DNA of 64,000 nt from Klebsormidium nitens (GCA_000708835.1 DF236989.1:62001-126000); one strand, 5' to 3'; shown: positions 5,509 through 60,298, counted from the first letter of the stretch. A program made the numbers and translations. Notes: generated by a model not told the origin, from the sequence alone.

Positions 5509-8500
5509 TCAAGCCCAGTATGCTAGCAAGTCCATCGTACCCATCCCCAAAAGAACGGCTAAGAAACAACCCCAGAGCAGCTTCGGGTTCCCCAAAACCT
5601 TTGCGCTGAAGAAATCGTGCGCAATCAGGTCCACAGTCGCCATGTAGATAAGAATCCCAGCCGTGAATGCATTGAAGGTGCCCTCGATCCCAAGCGCTTC
5701 TGGGGAGTTGTCGTTGTAAGACGACCTGCACGGAGACAAGATGGACTCAGATTGAAGTTTAGCTGCAGATTATCTTTGGGACTTTCACGTTGGCAATCTT
5801 TGAGGTGCGACGAAGCCGTTCAATCCCAGATCAGATGGGCTCGACGAAGGTGTCGTCGCATGCTGTTTGAGCGCGTAGAAATGTCGTCGCATGCTGTTTG
5901 AGCGCGTAGAAAACTGGACAATGCAACCAGGTGAAAGTCGAGCGACGATGCCCTCATCAGCCTCCAATCTTGTAAGACAAATCTTCCCTTGCAGTCAGAG
6001 CAAGCCCACCAACGTGATCAGACATGCGTATTTGGCGGGTGTGAAAAGATGGCGTCCACCTGTCAATCTTAAAAAGGACGTACATCCCGACTAGTGCGTT
6101 TAGACTTGGTGACGGCTTCAGCAGCTCGTTAAATGCAGACTCGAGTGGTCGCCAATCTGCTCATACATGGTCGTATGATGGACAGAATGGAACCACCATC
6201 CTCTCTGGCAGCAAAGAGTTGCAGTTGCAGTCGACAAAATCTGCCGGTCCAGGAAAAACCCTTCACGAGTCAGAGCCCATCAGAATCGCTTGTCCCTTCG
6301 AGCCAGACAGAGGTCACAACGGCACACTTCACACAGAGCAAGTCCAGCTTCAAAATATACTTTAAAAACAAATGTCCCATAAAAACCCCAACCACTTGAT
6401 TTCGTACCCAAAGGATCGAAAACAAACCAACGACATCACGTCAAATCTCCAGGACGAAAGTTACCAAGCCCACGACTGGCCAGTTACGCCGTCACCCCAA
6501 AAACATTGTTGAGATGAAATAATCATCAGAAATAATTCAGAAACTGCAGCTCCCTTACCTGACTCCGAGCCCGATAGCAATCCCAAGTGGCGTCGTGATC
6601 GCAAAGAAGAACGCCATGAGGAAGGTTGTCAAGCTTTTGTAGGCGGCCTCCACAATGCAGCTGCCAAGAGCCACGCCCTCAAAGAATTGGTGGAAGCAGA
6701 GCGCGATGAAGAGGCTGGTAACGGTGCACTTGCTGGTGTTCGTGCCGAGGCCAATGCCCACCAAGACCGAGTGCACAATGATGCCAATCTCAAGAACCTG
6801 ATGAGATCAGGAGGGGCAAGGGAAGCGTTAGCTTTTGGGATAACCGGAATGACAGAGCGGCAACGGATGATGGTATGATTACATTTGTGGGACCTTAGAA
6901 GTAGAGTTGGATTACAGGGGGAAGAGAGAAGACAGAAGAATCATATGCGTCAGACAAGCATTTTGGGGCACACAGTTGGGACACAAGATTTAAAAAGAAG
7001 GGAAGCAGAATCATAGATACTAGCCAAGCACGATTGCCCGCTTTTCCAGGATTCATCTTCAAAGCTGGTTGAGACCACATGTACAGCATTACTGTTCTGC
7101 TCAAGAGTTCAAGCAGGGTTACAGGAGAAAACACCGCACTTGGCTACCATAAGGGCAAAAGGATAGAACACTTGTTCGAAAGGACTTCAAATGCAAGTCA
7201 GATTTCCTCACCTCAGCAATGATCTTATGCCGGGGGGTCCCAAAAGTGCTCTCCTTGGCCACGCTGCCCGCCTCCACATCCAGTGACTTGACACTCCCGG
7301 CGGGGGGGTGCGCATCCCCGCTATCGACAGAAGGAGCTACCCCCTGGTGCGCAAGCCCGTGCACATGCACATGGTCTGGGTGATGGTGTCCATTGGCCAG
7401 CGCGAGTAGCGAGTTCTGGCCCGAGATCCAAGCATGAACTTGCACGGCCACGAGCTCGAGCGCGAGGCTGAGCGCGACGCCCATCGACGCGATCCAGAAG
7501 CTCCACGGGTAGACGGTCCACTTGCCGGTGAGGCATTCATTGGTCAGGTCTTCGGTGGCGTCGTTGAGGACGTGCGTGAACGCGAGCCCAAGGATGATTC
7601 CGGCGCCCAAGGCTTTTCCTGCAGAGAGGAGAAAAGGTGGGGGGGGTGAGCTGCATTAACATAAACATGAGGTGGGGGGTAAAACGAGATTAGTCTGAGA
7701 GGGTTTTTCGAGGGGACATGAGAGGGGTACATGACTTTTGAACCAACTGGGGGGGCAGAGGAGGGGGGGTTAGGGGGGGATGAAAAATCTGATCAAAGGC
7801 CCAGGTGAGCTAAATATGTAGCAAGAAGGACGCGAGTGTGAATCTGGAGGTTGGCGGCTGACAGGGGGCTTGGGGCCCACGATTGGAGTACTTAGAAGTG
7901 TAACAGAGATGCAAACAACGCTCGGACGAGATGGGGGGAGCCGGTGGGAGGGGCTTCCTAAGGCGGCAGAAATTCAACAGCCATTTCGCAAGGTTAGAGA
8001 GGATGGGGGCACTTGAAGGCTTTTAGTGAGATCAAGGGAAAAAGGAAACCTCAGACCACAACATTGCTAGGGGCAATCTGGGTCTGTGAAGGGCAGCTCA
8101 AGAAAGCTAAGGAGAAAAAATCTCAGAAAAACATGACAGTAGATAACAGAGCAGATCCTTCAGGCAGAAAGTATAGGACAGCACCCTTTCATGACCCCAC
8201 ATTCACAGGATGTCCAAACAGCGGGCCGCCTCACAAGGTTTCTGCACATTGCATGACTCTGATGTTCAGCCTAGGCAGTACTTCAAACTTTTATATGCGG
8301 TTTGGTAACAGAATGTGGCCCCGGCCAATCCCCTACAGCCCTCATATGACCCTCAGCTATCCAAAGCCTACCCAAGATAAGGCGCCCCAAGATAAGACGC
8401 CACGAGTTGACCGTCTCTCAAGGAAGCGGATGCTGTCCCGCCAGAAGCGGGTATGACTTCCAGTTAGGGTGCAGTCCGGTTGACGTCAACACAGAGGGTT

Positions 8501-50932: not shown

Positions 50933-51799
50933 TCAGAACTTCTTGTTGGTGCCCCAGCCCCAGTCAGAGGCCTCGAGACCCGCTTCGAGGAGCTTCAAAT
51001 TCAGCTGCTGGAAGCGGCGCATCATGAAGGACTTCGCCCCGGAGTTGGCGGCAACAAGGCGCCAGGTCCTGCATCTCGGGCCGGGGTTGATGGGGATGCA
51101 CTCCTTGAGGAAATCGCCCCCGACAGTGGTGATTGCGGCTTCCACGCCTGCGTCAGCGAGCGCGTCGAGCACGTCCGACTGGTTGGGGAAGAACTTGCTC
51201 AGTGTTGATGCTGCCATGGCGATCAGTCTTGCGTTGTCGGTGACCTGGAGGCGGCCAAGCCTGGCTGCAATGGCCCAGATTATAAAATGTGAGAAATCTG
51301 ATGGATCTTGTCGTGATGAAGATCGCCCGAAGATCGCAAGCTGTTTTTCTGAGACTTTGCTACTGGAAACAATCGGTTGGGTTATTCCGTTATTGATGGT
51401 GCTAGAAGCGTCGACTGGGTTGCCGCGCTTGCAAGCAATGCAACGCAAGCAATGCAAATTGTGTCCGGAGTAGCAGACAAGTGTGACGTATGTACGGCTG
51501 TATGTTCAACGTGCACGACTTGCAGAAACGGGGTCCGGAGTATGCGAAGCATATTGACAGATTACAAATGAGAAACGGTGAATATCGAGAGTGGTGAATA
51601 CCTGGATCTCTCGGCACACCGTTGTCGATGCCCGGGGTGTGGCGGCCCTGCTTGTTCGGGCGCTGCCAGTCGTTGATGAGCCCCGTGTCGAGCGGGCGCT
51701 TGATCGCGGGTGCGCCTTCGCCGAGGCCGTACGATGTGAGGCGGCCGAGGGCAGTGTCAGCTGCCCCTGCCCCCAGAGCGATGGCGCTGGGCTTGCCAT
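50933..51799 (-). CDS. Small two-exon hypothetical protein (~169 aa; exons 51799-51602 and 51244-50933) with a plastid-transit-like N-terminus
   Basis: S/T/A/R-rich first exon, phase-0 GT-AG intron, and a GC-rich coding-like second exon (VTDNARLIAMAASTLSKFFP...GWGTNKKF*). I recognised no family. Confidence 0.6.
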
Positions 51800-52719
51800 T
51801 CTGCTCGAACAAACTTGTAGATTGCACAAGTTGAGCTGTTAATGTGTTAGACGCCTCCTAGACGCCTGAAGATCATGGCCAACACCGTGTGCTGGCAAGG
51901 CACCACGCTGGAAGGTTTAGTGTTGCATCATCTGGCTGCGAAAAAGACAAGCACAAGGGGTTGCGCTCTAAGGTGATTATGTTTGTTTCCATTCATGGGT
52001 TCGTGCCCTTATCTTACTTCCTCAGAATGTCACAAATGGTGGTATTTTCACATCTTGGTCAACTGCAGGTGTAGAACTTCTGCATGCATGTTCAGTGCAT
52101 ACTTTGGTTTTGCAATGCTGTCAACTGGACCTTAAGGGCAGTCAAAGCACTTTGGATCCAAACCACTGCCATCGGGCATGCTGTTTCACTTGTTCTTGTT
52201 GTCTGCGATGTCTGGAAGTAAGGACTGCTTAGCACCATTGAGGAACTTTGTGTTCAGCTTCAAATTTCCTGGTACGAAACTTCCACAGATCCTGTTTCTA
52301 CACCACTTGAGATCGTGCTATGAAAGGGAGCTGTGCTTGTGCATCTATGTTGCCAAGTACTTTAGCCTACAGCTCTTGCTGTTCTTACATGCACTGACGA
52401 GCGCTATATTTATGATGCCGCACCGCTCCGATAGAACTTAACTGCATTGCCCCTTCTTAGCATGCCTGTGACACATGTTCCCTGGAACCCGGTTCTTAAC
52501 TCAGCTAGTTAGTACCTTACTGAGCACCTTCGTCGTCCCTGAAAGGCGTTCAAACACACTGGGTCACGCGTGAAAAGTTCCCCCGCGTGAGGCTGCTAAA
52601 AGTAGGGTGGTTTGGGGACCAAACCATACTTTCATTGGGAGGGTTCTTCTTGTTGGGTGACAATTGAGTTTTTGCGGGTGTCAACTCTCTTCCACATATT
52701 CACAGTCGCTACTTTCTCC

Positions 52720-55700
52720 ATGTTCAACAGATGCTCTAGTGTGTGCCCTGCTATTGCCACTGGCCATCGGCTTTGGTTGAAGGCTGGACCGCATCGATTG
52801 ACCAGGACAAGCGACCTTCAGCACCTCTTCCAAACGCAGCAATCAATGAGGCGCACCGGAGTGGCCAGAGCTGCTGCTTCTCCTAGGTGACTCGTTTGAA
52901 AAGGCATTTCCAAAACAGCTTCGAAGGTTGCCCGAAGGTTGCCCTTACTATGTAGGGTAGTAATAGCGGAAAACCAAATTGGAATAAGAATGTTCCGAGG
53001 GAATGCTTTGCGTGCATAGGCCATTTCTCTGTGACGCCTTACACGTCTTAACTCCTTGGTGGTCAGCGCCTTAGCTTGGCCATAACATGGTGTAAGGTAG
53101 TGCTTTATGTGCTGGAGATCTGTGTACAAAAGGCACCATGAGGCTCACAAGCATCGATTGTCCTCTCCGTTCACATGTTGAACCCTTTGTTTGGGGAAGC
53201 TGACCCTCTTTTCTGCTTACAGAGCTGAACTCAAAACGTATGAGGAAGCCCCTCCTAAAGATGGCCAAAGTCGGTGAGCTAGTGTCCTCCCCCCAATTCC
53301 CCCTTATGCCCCTGACGTCCTGTCTAGATTGTACAACAAGTGCACTCTGAAATGTAACACTCTACGGCTTCTAGTGTTTCTGCTTTACATGTGTGTCCCA
53401 TCCTGCATTTCGTCGACGGGGCTCCGTAGCAAGCAGACCGCCTCTTGGTGGAACGTGGGTCCGTAATCTCGAATCGTGCATGCTTGGTGGTTCATCGAGT
53501 TCAGGAACCTCTTCCGCAGTTCGTCCAGACAGGGTCCCTTAACAGTGTTCTCTTATTCATACAATTCCCTCTAAACTTCTCGTCTGCTCTTCAAAATCTC
53601 TCATCTGCCTCAAAGTCAACTCTAAAACAATCTTCAAATATGTCTGGTGCAGATTCTACATGAACCCAATGTGCCCGTATGCTCAGCGGAGCTGGGTTGG
53701 TGTCAAATACAAAGTGAGTGCCGAAGAATGTTTCATGAGTTTCGTTCCTCGCATTTCTTGCCATCAAACCTAAGGTTCGTCTTCGTAGAAGCTACGGTGC
53801 CTGACTGGCCATGGCAATGTCATGGCTACCTTGTTAGATAAGAGCTTCTTGAGCAACGGCCGTTTACGTATCTAGTGTGGCTGAAAAATATGCCGTATTC
53901 TTCCCCCGGATCAATCTGCAAAGAAGCGGATTGTGTAATTGAGCCCATCTTGACACTGCGTTGAACTTGAATCTCGTGCCGATTTTTTCAGGGACTGGAT
54001 AACGAGTTGGAATCTGTGGAGGTCGACTTGCGGAAGATGCCGCAGTGGTACAAGGACCTGTATCCCGTGGGCAAGGTAAGCCCGTCGGGAGCGGACTTAC
54101 AAACAGGGGTCTCAGGTGGCTCCATTGTGTAAGACTGTCGGTGCAAAAGCTGAGTCAAAAGCATAGTCGATGGATTTTCGTAAGACATGCTATCCCTTTG
54201 TCCATGACCCGAAAAGAGGGCCGAAGAGATTGGCTCTCCTGGACGACGCCGTTTGGAAGCTAGAACCGATGACGACGATGTGCATCAGTTTCCGAGGAGT
54301 TTCTGTAAGATGACCGGAACGGCTGAAGAAATCCTGAGGGCCTTCGTAGGAGTTCGTCGAAGTCTATCCTGTGGGGTCAGCGAAGTTAGTTCCAAGCGAT
54401 CGATTACAATATTGGTTAGCTCGTAACCTACTCAAGGTTTCCGAGCGTGGTCATGCGCCCATTTCAGAAGCAAGATTTGCTGAACCTTCTGACCTAATTA
54501 AAGTGTGTGTTTCAGTGGTCGAAATTCACGCTTTTATGGTTATCATGATTGTTGACGATTTCGGCTTGCCTACAGGTCCCGTCGATCGAGCACAACGGGA
54601 AGGTGACCGGGGAAAGCTTGGACGTGCTCAAGTACCTGGACACGCATTTCGACGGTCCGAAATTGGAGCCCGCTGTGAGCGTCTCGGACTCCATATGCTT
54701 TCTTGCTGTATAACCTGCCTCCTCTAACCCTCGTTTTTGTCGATCACCTATTTCCTCAACTCGGTCTTCTCGTGCCGCTGCCTAGGATCTCTCTCCGGTT
54801 CTCCCGACTCCCGATCCTGGTCTGCACGAAGGAAGTAATAACGCTGTTTTCTCGTACTTGACGCCGAGTAACATGCCACGTTTCTTCGGGCGCTCGCAAG
54901 TGCTCCCCTGGTGAAGCAATGGTGAGAGGTGCAAAAGATCAGCGCCGCAGGCAGGTTTTGCATGTACATATCCTCTTTATCACACGACTCCTGATTTCCC
55001 CGTTTCATCAGCGGAGGTCACTCTCTGAAAGCAGCATATTGGCGGAGCCCAACCGAACCCTCTTGAGAAGGTCGAGCAGGCACTTTGGGCCTGCTCTCTT
55101 GAAAGAGTGCTGTCCTCAACAACAGCCATCTCCTGAAATTATCACCAGCGACTAATACATCGAATCACATTTCTTTCGCCGCTGCGCACTTTGCCGGCTT
55201 CAACTTGGCACTTCACGTCGTCAATGACCACCCAAACTCCGCTCAGCAACCTCCCGCCGCGGAACCGGCGTCCGACGTTCCAGCCAATGGTGTGCCCCTT
55301 GAGCAGTTGGGCTTCTGGAGGCCTCTTCCAAACGCCTTTTCGCATCAAACACGAGAACCTCCTTCTTTTGCAGTCTAAGGAGGATCGAGTCACCGTACAA
55401 AAGCTCGTCGAGTTTTGCGACAGGGAGCTCGTCCCGCTTGGCTTCGGCACGGCGAGTATGAAGGACGCAGCGCCGCACGAGTACAAGAAGGGGATAAGTA
55501 AGCTCACAAGGCGATCTGTTCTGCTATCAAGGTGCATTTCCTGTATGCACCCGGATATATGATTTTGACCCCGCTGTCGATTGCCATCCGCGATGAGGGG
55601 GTATTCGAGCCCGTATTAGTACCTGGTCCCTGTCCCGGTACCTAACTCGTATGTAAAGAAATGGGTACCACAGTTCCTTCGCTTTGTTCGGGTTCGGGAC

Positions 55701-57873
55701 TCGGTTCCGAGGTTCAATAAAGGTCTGGGCTCCGAGCATGTTCGACTCTTCGCGTGTCGTAGTATAGGGCTTTGCTGCTGTTCCTGGGGTTCATATCGAG
55801 AGGCGACTATTCCGAGAGCACTTCAATGTCTTTTCCGGTCAGCTTTGGCGCGGCGCACGGGTACAAGGCGGGAGTGATTAAGGTCACGGTTGGAGTTGGC
55901 TCGAAAGGCTTTACTAACGAGTCTAATCGGCTTTGTGTGTTCCCTGCTGTCTTTATCTAGAATAAATGCTCGCAGCGAGTGGCTCTTCGATCAGCCTTCA
56001 AAGAGATGAAATCCGAAGGATTGTATTTCGCAGTATGCGGTTTGATGCACTTGCGATCTGTCGGCCGGTATCGGCTCCATCACAACCATCTGCTTTTGGA
56101 TTCCCTCCGAGAACTTTCACACCTGTGTGCAGAGCCGGTTCTCGACGTCTTGGAGCGCCAGCTGGAGGCCGCGGAAGCGGCGGGAAAGGGGCCATATCTA
56201 GTTGGTGGTTTTTCAACGGTGAGGTCGCGCATTGCAATTGCGAGCACAACCCTAAGACGCTTAATCTGGAAACTTTACAGGACCAGGGCAAATTGAATCG
56301 GGAAGAGGTGATTGTTCTTGTCTCTGTGTGCCGCACGAGGAGAGGAATGGCTTGACCGCAGGACGGGCCCAGAACATGTAAGAATAAGAATATGGTGGTC
56401 TATGGTTTCCTAACCGATCTCCAGGCGCTCACCGAACAACTAGGGACGCAAGCGGCGCGCTCGTCTCTCAACCGCTCCCGCGGCCTTTCAACCCTGTCCC
56501 TAGACGTAACCCAAGTGTCTGCCGCTATCCAAACCCTTGACCTCTGCCGCACGGTAAAGATCAGAATCTCGCTGCTGGTCGGGTCTGACACCCTGCCATA
56601 TTCGAACCCTTGACTCCACCCGTTATCTACGTCCTCATTCTTAATCGCTAACTCAGCTTTCGACTATCCGCAGGCGGATGCGGCGATCCTGCCCTTCCTC
56701 TGGCGCTTCCAGTTCATCTTCGAAAACTTCCGGGGCCTCGACCTCTTTGAAGATCACCCCCGGCTCGCAAAGTACTTTCAGGTGAGAGGCCGTGTGAGCT
56801 TTATGTCTGGACCCCTACTGGAATGGCCAAGCTCAGGGGTTTCTGGCCTGGTGGTTTTGGCTCATCGCCGTTCGACAAACCCTTGATCGACGGAAGGCAC
56901 AGTTCAGGCGAAGAGGTTGGACTGCTTTCCGCCTTCCGAAAGCGAGCCGAGGTTCACGAAAAGGAAGAGAATCGACCATAACTTTGTGGCGTTTTTCGGA
57001 GCAGAGTGTTGGCTTCTCTCTGCGGCTTCTCCGCACATTTGAAAACCATATGAAACTCTCAAAAGTAGAGGCTTTTGAGACGTCTGCCCAGACTCTTTTA
57101 CGAGATGGTGTACTGATTGCCCAATGTCACGTGATTGAAATGTTGGGTCGTGGCTTTCTTCGAGTTCAGATGAGGTGGGATCCTATTTTAGACAGGTGGT
57201 TGTTCATCGTCTTTCTACGAGCATGTGCGTGGTTCTGCGGCGTACTCAGGACCCTCTCCGAAACCTTCGCCTAGCCCTTTTGTAAGCATTGGTCCAAAAG
57301 TTGCTTGACATTTCGAGCTTTAACATTTGTCTTCGTACAAACATGGTCAACTCTTGCCTCATCATCCAGCACGTGGCGAGCCAGCCCTTTTTTACGGAAA
57401 CCACAGCGGACCGGGACCGCATGCTCGAGGCGTATACGTTTGCGCTGGTGAGGTTCGGCACGTCCCCTCATGCGCTTCATTTTCCTTTTCTGTAGATCGT
57501 GAGCGAGCAGCCGTTCTTTGCGGAGACTAAGCCGGCACACGAACGAATGCATGCCACGTACAAGACGTTCCTGGTGAGGGGTCGGGATCGGCGGAGGTTC
57601 CAAGATCTATCCTGCATAAGCTCTGTCCTTTTTTGGAAGGATCTGGGTACCCCTGTGCAGTGCATCGGTGTACGGGGCTCGTGAAATCGATTCTGCTGTG
57701 CACGTATGAGGATCCTGATTCACGGACTTCGCAGCTCATTCCCGAAAGTTCGGGTTGTGCTTGACGAGTAATATCGCATGTCAATCGGTGTGCAACTTTT
57801 TCTCTTACAGGACATGGACTACTTTGGCAAGATCGGGCTGGCGAGGAAGCCGACTGCAGCAGCTGCCTCATAA
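52720..57873 (+). CDS. GSTL: Cys-type glutathione S-transferase (lambda/omega-like), probable organellar transit peptide, with a duplicated penultimate exon
   Basis: DGQS|RFYMNPMCPYAQRSWV (active-site CPYA), MPQWYKDLYPVGK|VPSIEHNGKVTGESLDVLKYLDTHFDGP, KGPYLVGGFST|ADAAILPFLWRF, HPRLAKYFQ. Exon phases are consistent from ATG 52720. Confidence 0.9.
57370..57573 (+). other. Pair of paralogous 78-nt exons (57370-57447 and 57496-57573), candidate mutually exclusive exons
   Basis: Both are phase 0-0 with AG and GTGAGG sites. They encode HVASQPFFTETTADRDRMLEAYTFAL and IVSEQPFFAETKPAHERMHATYKTFL and are separated by only 48 nt. Confidence 0.8.
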
Positions 57874-58953
57874 AACAGTCACGTCCAGGAACAATCGGGT
57901 GTCGTCAGAAGATCCGATTGTATCTTGTAAAAATGTACATACATTCTTTGCTGGGCGGCACGTTAGTGTAGCGGGTTTGCAACGCTTGACATGCCAGTGC
58001 GCGTTGGAACAATTTCTACAGTCCAGGTATTTGGATTGAGACGCATGCGCGCGCGCAAGCTTTTACGTGAGTCTTTCGTAAGGGAATGACTTGAAAGCTA
58101 GGAGTTACTGTTTTGTGTTGTATTTGAGTAGACGCGTTTCATTGATTTACACCAGCGCTATCAAAGGGCCGAGCTTTGTACAACCATGGCAGAACGATCT
58201 GATGCAGCGCAAAGCACGGACCTGTATAGTGTAAAACGGACGGTTTTGGCCGCATCTGGGCATCCTTAGGCAATCCCGAGCATGCCACCAGTACGTCCGT
58301 ACGGTACAATTTGTTGGTACATACTGCACACCATGTGAGCTATCATATGGCCCCGACCATGTGTGGCTGCGCCAAAAGCTAGATCTAGCCATCCGGGCGG
58401 CCGCCCGTCCGTGACCATCACAACAAGCGCCTGGACGACACACGTCATGATCATGGCATGAGAACAATCACTAGTTATGGCATGTATGCAGCGCTAAAGT
58501 ATAATCGCCTGGATCACTCGCATATCTTGTGATGTATCATCAAAAAGCTGACTGGGCTGAGGCCGATAAGAAACTCGAGAGTACTAACATGCAAGCGCGC
58601 TGGCATCTGATGGTTGCTCACTTCTTTCTTGATCTGTGAAGTGCACTGATCCAACAGTGCTCCATGGCACAATGATGTAGCTGGACAGAGTGCTGCGCGG
58701 GACCGTCCTGCGTCTGGAGGACCTGAGCTCTAGAATGAGTCAGGCAACCCAGATTGAGGTTGTCTGAGGAAGGCATGCTAGAGTTACCTGGCCGTTTTTT
58801 TGCACTGCTCCAAGGCCCGACTCAGTGATCCGATCTGAAGATATCCCCTGCATGATACTGAGAAATGAAGCGATAAAAGCCTCAAACTCCAGGAACATAA
58901 AGAGGAAGAAAGGTAAATGTACAAGAGAATGTGAGTTCAGAGGCGCTTTTTCA

Positions 58954-60298
58954 TTATCCTCTTGATGCGGACGCGGGATCGCTAGAGAACATGTGCTTGA
59001 CTCGTGATAGAATGGAGTCCTGGTTTGGGTCGTACGGGTGGTCTTTGCTTGGAATCTCCAGGATAGCCGGGATGGTGTTTCGGTAGTTGTCCACCACATA
59101 ACGGATCATGTTTGCGATCTGCAGCCAAAAGGGAAGCTTTGTCTGGACGGATGTATCTCAAGTGCATAAAGCACACAGACAATCTTGCAGCAACTGAGGA
59201 ACATGTACACATGCCGTATCTGTGAACCACTGGTCCCTTGGAGGCTATATCTTTCATTGTCTTCAAGACAAGCAAGCTACATGGGACGTCTAAGACCAGA
59301 GTCTACCTACTTTTTTCAGCAGTCTTGTGCATTATAACAATTGCCCTGAGAAAAAAGCAGCTGCAGTAACATCAAAGAGCGATTGAGGACTTGTAATACT
59401 CCAGGCCAATGAGCCAAACCACATTGAGAAGCAGAACTCACATATTGACTAATAAGAACCACCGCAATGTCGTCCCTTGACGTGAAGTCTTTGAACGTAT
59501 CCTCGATCTGCTTTGTCGTCGTTTCTGCATCAAATCTTGTTGTTAGTAGCTTCAGAAAGCTGAGCTTACACACTGGCAATCCATACCAACAAGGCTGCCT
59601 CAGAACTTAATCTGTGGGAGGGTCGGAATGAGAAAGGCGCGACCCAAGACAGATTGCAGTAGTGCTTGTGGAGGCGAGGGCGACTGTATAGTCGCAGATG
59701 CAATCGTACATACTCAATATTGCTAGAGCGCTCTCGAATTGCCTTTTCAGGAGAAAGTGTGCACAGATGACGTACTTGAATCCACGACGAGATAGTTTGT
59801 TTTTCTGCGCAGATCTACATTCCCCACGCCCGCGAGCAGGAAGCCAGTGATAGTATCCTGCAATGAAGTCCACCATCAGGATTGTTGCGAAAATATGCCG
59901 ATGAGCAAGTCCAGTTTAGAAGTGAATTCTAGGTCTGTTTTGCCAGGCAATCACAGTTGCCGATTGACCAAGTGGTCAGTGACGAAAGTTGTCTGAGCTG
60001 GAAAATTATAGCCGAATTGCAAATGCTGGCAGTGATTTGGAGCAAGTCATATGCAGGGATGATGTGCAGCTCATTTGAACGAACTCAGACTACATCGCAC
60101 GTTTCATTGTTTGTTGGCATTGCTGCTGAATGAAGTGGTGAAAAGGTTGTATCAACTTGAAATAGGCATTAAACAGATTCTGCCTAAGCGCAATTGCAAG
60201 GCCCACTGCAAATCATTGCGGCCAACTAATTCAAAGTGGTAGGGCCTCACCTCATCAGCAATCATAGCCACCAACTTCCCTTCTTGTGACATGGCCAT
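58954..60298 (-). CDS. VHA-F: V-type H+-ATPase subunit F, 4 exons
   Basis: [16 protein letters not shown]|[27 protein letters not shown]|..[26 protein letters not shown]|[41 protein letters not shown]. Confidence 0.97.

Follow-up and report, generated by a model that had tools for sequence, protein, structure and literature searches.

The gene examined here, kfl00040_0200 of Klebsormidium nitens, lies on the plus strand of the window (the whole 64-kb stretch of DNA that was analysed), and its public protein record, GAQ79876.1, is described as a "glutathione transferase" of 335 residues. It bears the name KnGSTL1 in the supplementary alignments of PMC9937507, and is placed in the maximum-likelihood tree of that paper; the Lambda-sister "Kn1" of the same study is another gene, kfl00304_0120, and is distinct from KnGSTL1. 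Two alternative forms of the second-to-last coding exon, termed A and B below, are found in the gene, and the public annotation holds isoform B alone: the translation of the model containing exon B is identical to GAQ79876.1, and isoform A is unannotated. Both isoforms are in-frame and 335 residues long, with differences at 15 of the 26 swapped residues. As isoform A would be 95.5% identical to GAQ79876.1, and the 90% identity cluster of the latter has a single member, isoform A is absent from the protein collection.

The exon map and the evidence on splicing come from assembled Logan contigs (not raw reads) of four runs from four studies (X1, X7, X11, and X14), mapped to positions 52400-58200. 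The RNA label of these runs was a guess; the contigs contain eleven GT..AG joints at high depth and cover the introns thinly, and the runs therefore contain spliced RNA. The features of the locus are as follows.

51875..51972, plus strand: exon 1, coding part; start codon and first part of the N-terminal extension, completing the match to GAQ79876.1
52731..52886, plus strand: exon 2; GT..AG joints in four runs, splice sites checked
53223..53273, plus strand: exon 3; RNA contig joints
53653..53713, plus strand: exon 4, with the catalytic motif CPYAQR; joints and translation, with C, P, Q, and R invariant in the alignment
53992..54075, plus strand: exon 5; RNA contig joints
54576..54674, plus strand: exon 6; RNA contig joints
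55374..55497, plus strand: exon 7; RNA contig joints
56133..56218, plus strand: exon 8; RNA contig joints
56674..56781, plus strand: exon 9, GST_C region, helices alpha6 to alpha8; Pfam GST_C_2 (E 2.3e-6), joints to A or B
57370..57447, plus strand: alternative exon 10A, 26 codons; joints on both sides in four of four runs, orthologue on contig L001 of a relative
57448..57495, plus strand: spacer between A and B, 48 nt; GT..AG, in-frame TAG, spliced out in no contig
57466..57470, plus strand: putative branch site of exon B, CTCAT; motif scan
57496..57573, plus strand: alternative exon 10B, 26 codons, the annotated form; joint to exon 9 in four of four runs and to the last exon in three of four, orthologue on L001
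57811..57873, plus strand: last exon, coding part, DMDYFGKIGLARKPTAAAAS and then the stop; joints, contigs, and translation

At the 5' end, an RNA contig loose end ahead of 52729 matches 51941-51970, in exon 1; at the other end, the 3' UTR of KnGSTL1 extends at least to 58200.

Several lines of evidence place the enzyme in the Lambda class of glutathione transferases. The four residues C, P, Q, and R of the CPYAQR motif are those that do not vary in an alignment with Lambda and Omega homologues, and the precomputed Pfam domains are GST_N and GST_C. A sequence search of the PDB returned poplar GSTL1 (4PQH, E 2.1e-36) and GSTL3 (4PQI, E 3.6e-33) first, followed by Leishmania TDR1 (1e-24) and by Omega GSTs at 1e-13 or weaker, and the same two poplar structures, 4pqi and 4pqh, were the top matches by fold in Foldseek (TM 0.82-0.89, normalized by target). 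Among named homologues, conifer IN2-1 proteins come nearest, at 44% identity. On the basis of the motif, the sequence and fold matches, and the published tree, KnGSTL1 is a Lambda-class GST, as the first-pass annotation, made from the sequence, had supposed. Plant enzymes of this class are monomeric, with deglutathionylation (thiol transferase) rather than conjugating activity (PMC4138524), and KnGSTL1 resembles its land-plant counterparts (poplar GSTL1 and GSTL3, and the maize IN2-1 family) in its CPYAQR cysteine, its GST fold, and its additional helix alpha9. An N-terminal extension of 71 residues, encoded by the coding part of exon 1 and by most of exon 2 (51875-52943), precedes the fold and is poorly predicted in the structure model; transcripts of a relative, described below, keep the open frame and have a similar MAN... 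start. Plastid-targeted GSTLs also carry such an extension (PMC4138524), and by analogy with them that of KnGSTL1 may be an organelle-targeting peptide.

Exons A (57370-57447, HVASQPFFTETTADRDRMLEAYTFAL) and B (57496-57573, IVSEQPFFAETKPAHERMHATYKTFL) are each 78 nt long, in phase 0-0, and preceded by an AG acceptor. They share 11 of 26 residues and 43 of 78 bases. The ungapped BLOSUM62 score between the two is 46, which was equalled in none of 200,000 shuffles, and among 51,640 stop-free 26-residue windows read in six frames across the 64-kb window, B is the sole other one to score 46 against A. The motif QPFFxET likewise has two sites in the window, one in A and the other in B, and neither tblastn nor the motif search returned a third copy of the exon within the 64 kb. 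At the DNA level blastn draws no link between A and B; since the two have diverged beyond its reach, the duplication must be old. The pair had been singled out from the sequence as two paralogous 26-codon exons of phase 0-0 with good splice sites, and this description holds on all counts, down to a shared donor. So does the remark that the intervening 48 nt are far shorter than the other introns: the remaining ten measure 237-758 nt, and the spacer (57448-57495), which reads VRFGTSPHALHFPFL in frame, ends in a TAG stop. With regard to the splice sites themselves, the donors of A and B (57439-57453 and 57565-57579) are the same over nine bases (CTG/GTGAGG), with 55% of the exon bases shared, and the pyrimidine tract of the B acceptor, TTTTCCTTTTCTGTAG, is much stronger than that of A, CTCATCATCCAG.

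Contig depths at the joints that connect either exon to its neighbors were as follows, in the order X1, X7, X11, and X14.

56781 to 57370, exon 9 to A: 352, 77, 42, and 5.8
57447 to 57811, A to the last exon: 347, 77, 42, and 5.8
56781 to 57496, exon 9 to B: 41, 137, 61, and 9.1
57573 to 57811, B to the last exon: 0, 137, 52, and 9.1

Three of these joints are thus present in every run, and that from B to the last exon in all except X1. No contig of the four runs contains the joint from A to B (57447 to 57496), or the joint from exon 9 to the last exon that would skip both (56781 to 57811); as assembled contigs drop rare variants, double inclusion and double skipping may each occur at a low level. 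The mutual exclusivity that the first-pass annotation had proposed is therefore upheld in the contig joints, where neither of the outcomes it had named as fatal to the idea, routine inclusion of both exons or an exon that is never used, occurred. It is very probable, in our judgment, that the second-to-last coding exon of KnGSTL1 was duplicated in tandem long ago, and that the copies now serve as mutually exclusive exons. The contrary position, that A or B is a pseudo-exon or a product of splicing noise, or that both are usually included together, could appeal to the annotation of isoform B alone, and to X1, in which the contig containing B retains the next intron and the joint from B to the last exon is unlisted. 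This position is already contradicted, and we regard it as extremely improbable: joints to the last exon were found from A in four of four runs and from B in three of four, at depths comparable to those of constitutive joints, no joint between A and B was found, and, as set out below, a relative has separate A-only and B-only mRNAs, and both exons are under purifying selection.

The balance between the two forms is not constant. The depth ratio of A to B is highest in X1, at about 8.5:1, and lowest in X7, at about 0.56:1, an approximately 15-fold spread between studies which, with one depth to each contig, is a rough figure, and this variation hints at regulation. In X1, where A is dominant, the contig with the exon 9 to B joint (57494-57839) retains the following intron (57574-57810), which in X11 is also covered by a thin unspliced contig. 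If read through, the intron would supply 36 codons and then a stop. Such intron-retaining B-type RNA may represent slow splicing, unfinished transcripts, or a product that is unproductive under some conditions.

Exon 9 by itself, used as query in an exhaustive protein search, led to sequences of an uncultured relative, comprising a 136-kb environmental genomic contig (L001) and two metatranscriptome contigs, L002 and L003, the latter of which emerged from a scan of metagenome contigs. On L001, an exon A' at 7339-7416 (HVTSQPFFEATKADRDRMLEAYSFAL) matches A at 21 of 26 residues, and an exon B' at 7458-7535 (IVSDQAFFAETKPEREKMHAVYKMML) matches B at 18 of 26; AG and GT sites are present at both, and the spacer between them is 41 nt. 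L002 maps from exon 9 to A' and on to the last exon, and L003 from exon 9 to B' and on to the last exon; the relative too therefore produces mRNAs of each single-inclusion type. Conservation in a related alga, which had been put forward as a check on the original proposal, is thus found for the two exons, for the short spacer, and for both mRNA forms.

Between K. nitens and this relative, synonymous sites are saturated (pS 0.75 for A and 0.80 for B), and pN, at 0.108 (A) and 0.171 (B), is in line with that of the constitutive exons (exon 9, 0.083; last exon, 0.123). Each exon has its own orthologue, with pN of 0.11-0.17 for A with A' and B with B', versus 0.38-0.39 for the crosswise comparisons. 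Taken together, this orthology and the low pN indicate that the duplication is older than the split between the species, and that both copies have been retained since. Residues that distinguish the isoforms are kept in both species (A/B: H/I at position 1, A/P at 13, L/H at 19, and E/A at 20), as is the lysine at position 23 of B. Judged by these substitution patterns, purifying selection maintains A and B alike, each with an identity of its own. In the intron upstream of A', L001 also contains two decayed A-like copies (7034-7102 and 7181-7265), which match the A exon of L002 at 78% and 85% identity and have no usable donors: in one, both splice signals are missing, and in the other the frame is shifted and the donor destroyed. 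No trace of such copies was found in K. nitens. The decayed copies show the fate of copies that are not under selection, and that duplication has continued at this spot.

That ongoing duplication, with two dead A-like copies upstream of A' in the relative, lends some color to the idea that the pair is truly alternative yet functionally neutral, a leftover of frequent local exon duplication in which the proteins are interchangeable and the use of either exon is unregulated. We nevertheless find this unlikely. Both exons have remained open, with intact splice sites, over a divergence that saturated synonymous sites; they have changed at non-synonymous sites at a pace similar to that of constitutive exons, and have kept the residues that tell the isoforms apart, whereas the extra copies of the relative decayed quickly. 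The variation of the A:B ratio between studies also speaks against unregulated use.

With regard to the mechanism that enforces the choice between A and B, the geometry of the locus points to the spacer. Its 48 nt in K. nitens and 41 nt in the relative compare with 237-758 and 226-1221 nt, respectively, for the other introns, and it has stayed short in both species while its sequence diverged. We found no intron statistics in the genome paper (PMC4052687) against which to set these lengths. In both species the A of a CTCA[T/C] motif (CTCAT in K. nitens, CTCAC in the relative) lies exactly 25 nt before the B acceptor, and this candidate branch-site A is 23 nt after the A donor in K. nitens, and 16 nt after it in the relative. 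Splicing would then require a single decision, in which the donor of exon 9 pairs with the acceptor of A or with that of B. If A were chosen, the putative branch site of B would be 23 nt from the A donor (16 nt in the relative), too close, as we propose, for both sites to be occupied together, so that A would be joined to the last exon; if B were chosen, A would be removed along with the intron. On the precedent of alpha-tropomyosin exons 2 and 3, a distance this short between donor and branch site would prevent the use of both sites. Those exons resemble the pair in KnGSTL1 in being adjacent and paralogous, equal in length and phase, and present exactly one per mRNA; alpha-tropomyosin is, however, an animal system, whereas KnGSTL1 belongs to a streptophyte alga, and its steric step is deduced from geometry. 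By this analogy, steric exclusion by the short spacer, acting at a putative branch site, is probably the mechanism, and the most likely of those considered.

Three other candidates were tried and rejected. An RNA-structure switch finds no footing in the cluster, which folds no better than shuffled sequence (z-score +1.24) and whose exons and flanks are connected by no inverted repeat; a search for Rfam families within 51000-59000 returned none. Decay of aberrant transcripts cannot enforce exclusivity, because each exon is 78 nt long and the reading frame survives whether both exons are included or both are skipped. A U2/U12 mismatch, involving the minor spliceosome, is countered by the donors, both of which are ordinary GTGAG sites (GTGAGG). 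Exclusivity might still be real and owe nothing to the short spacer, arising instead from competing RNA structures, from splicing regulators, or from decay of the wrong products. The folding result, the missing repeats, the in-frame products, and the ordinary donors bear on this broader explanation too, as does the finding that splice signals alone are conserved with the relative outside the exons, and as does the persistence of a short spacer in the face of sequence divergence; we allow it a small, though not negligible, chance, and retain steric exclusion as the preferred account.

To locate the swapped piece in the protein, AlphaFold models were made of K. nitens isoform B without its N-terminal extension (pLDDT 87.4), and of isoform A of the relative (L002:260-1060; pLDDT 89.2). 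Modeling of both isoforms had been suggested at the outset, and the two folded with identical secondary structure, at pLDDT 92-97 over the swapped piece. In the models, the cassette spans the final turn of helix alpha8, a QPFF segment that forms a short helical turn, a loop (xETxx), and helix alpha9. Downstream of it, both isoforms end in the same 20 residues, and the shared last exon adds two short helices. The original description of the event as a swap of the C-terminal helix is supported as to the position of the swapped helix.

From the sequence and helical periodicity, the alpha9 residues that A and B share (R17, M18, Y22, and L26) fall on one face of the helix, and the isoform-specific ones (16, 19, 20, 23, 24, and 25) cover the remaining faces. 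Isoform A has L19, E20, F24, and A25, where isoform B has H19, A20, K23, T24, and F25. Omega, Tau, Delta, and Lambda GSTs all possess a helix alpha9 (PMC4138524). In related GST classes it faces the hydrophobic substrate site, and it would do so in KnGSTL1 as well; in the literature searched, we found no report of contact between alpha9 and substrate in Lambda GSTs. The change from L19/E20/F24/A25 to H19/A20/K23/T24/F25 could then yield a pair of enzymes that differ in the substrates or ligands they prefer, and by analogy with those classes we infer such a difference between the A and B isoforms. A more ambitious reading would make the choice between A and B a condition-regulated switch, by which a Lambda GST that is probably organelle-targeted has its substrate or ligand pocket retuned, and would make the pair one of many such conserved pairs in Klebsormidium. 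We advance this tentatively, and would sooner expect it to fail in some part than to hold in full. If it is true, then the Klebsormidium lineage would be an exception among greens, and would offer a natural system for learning how either-or exons come about through tandem exon duplication with short spacers.

Mutually exclusive exons that arise from tandem duplication are a known kind of gene structure, as are GST genes that encode several enzymes by way of alternative splicing. In the green lineage, mutually exclusive exons are to our knowledge thought to be rare; the literature that we searched yielded few validated pairs there, a full-text search found no paper on such exons in Klebsormidium, and no report was found in the literature searched of either-or exons that swap alpha9 in a Lambda GST. 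Poplar GSTL3 has two splice forms, one of which is barely expressed, and the kind of event is not described (PMC4138524). Alternatively spliced insect GSTs, for example Drosophila GSTO2A/B, GSTD11, GSTZ2, and GSTT3 (PMC4195677), like KnGSTL1 combine a shared N-terminal part with differing C-terminal parts. In GSTO2A/B, exon 1 is shared and is followed by alternative terminal exons with their own 3' UTRs (PMC4195677), whereas KnGSTL1 swaps a single internal cassette of 26 codons and keeps its last exon in common. In Klebsormidium, exon skipping is associated, unusually, with short introns (PMC6142364), and pairs such as A and B could account for that pattern.

One gene of a land-dwelling green alga thus gives rise to two enzymes that differ in the swapped cassette and nowhere else. 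For studies of the enzyme family, this adds an unannotated isoform to a gene that features in published GST analyses of the streptophyte outgroup to land plants. It also supplies a clean and conserved case of mutually exclusive splicing in the green lineage, the geometry of which makes the steric model directly testable. The substrate site of Lambda GSTs is poorly understood, and here nature provides a helix-swap experiment in which the enzymes are identical but for 15 residues around alpha9.

A further observation concerns the 5' end of the gene. Directly 5' of the GST start codon, the minus strand at 51560-51810 carries an open, G+C-rich stretch that looks coding, and the RNA contig loose end, which runs for up to 255 nt ahead of exon 2, would extend into it. 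The GST gene and this minus-strand neighbor may therefore be arranged head-to-head, with 5' regions that overlap or are shared.
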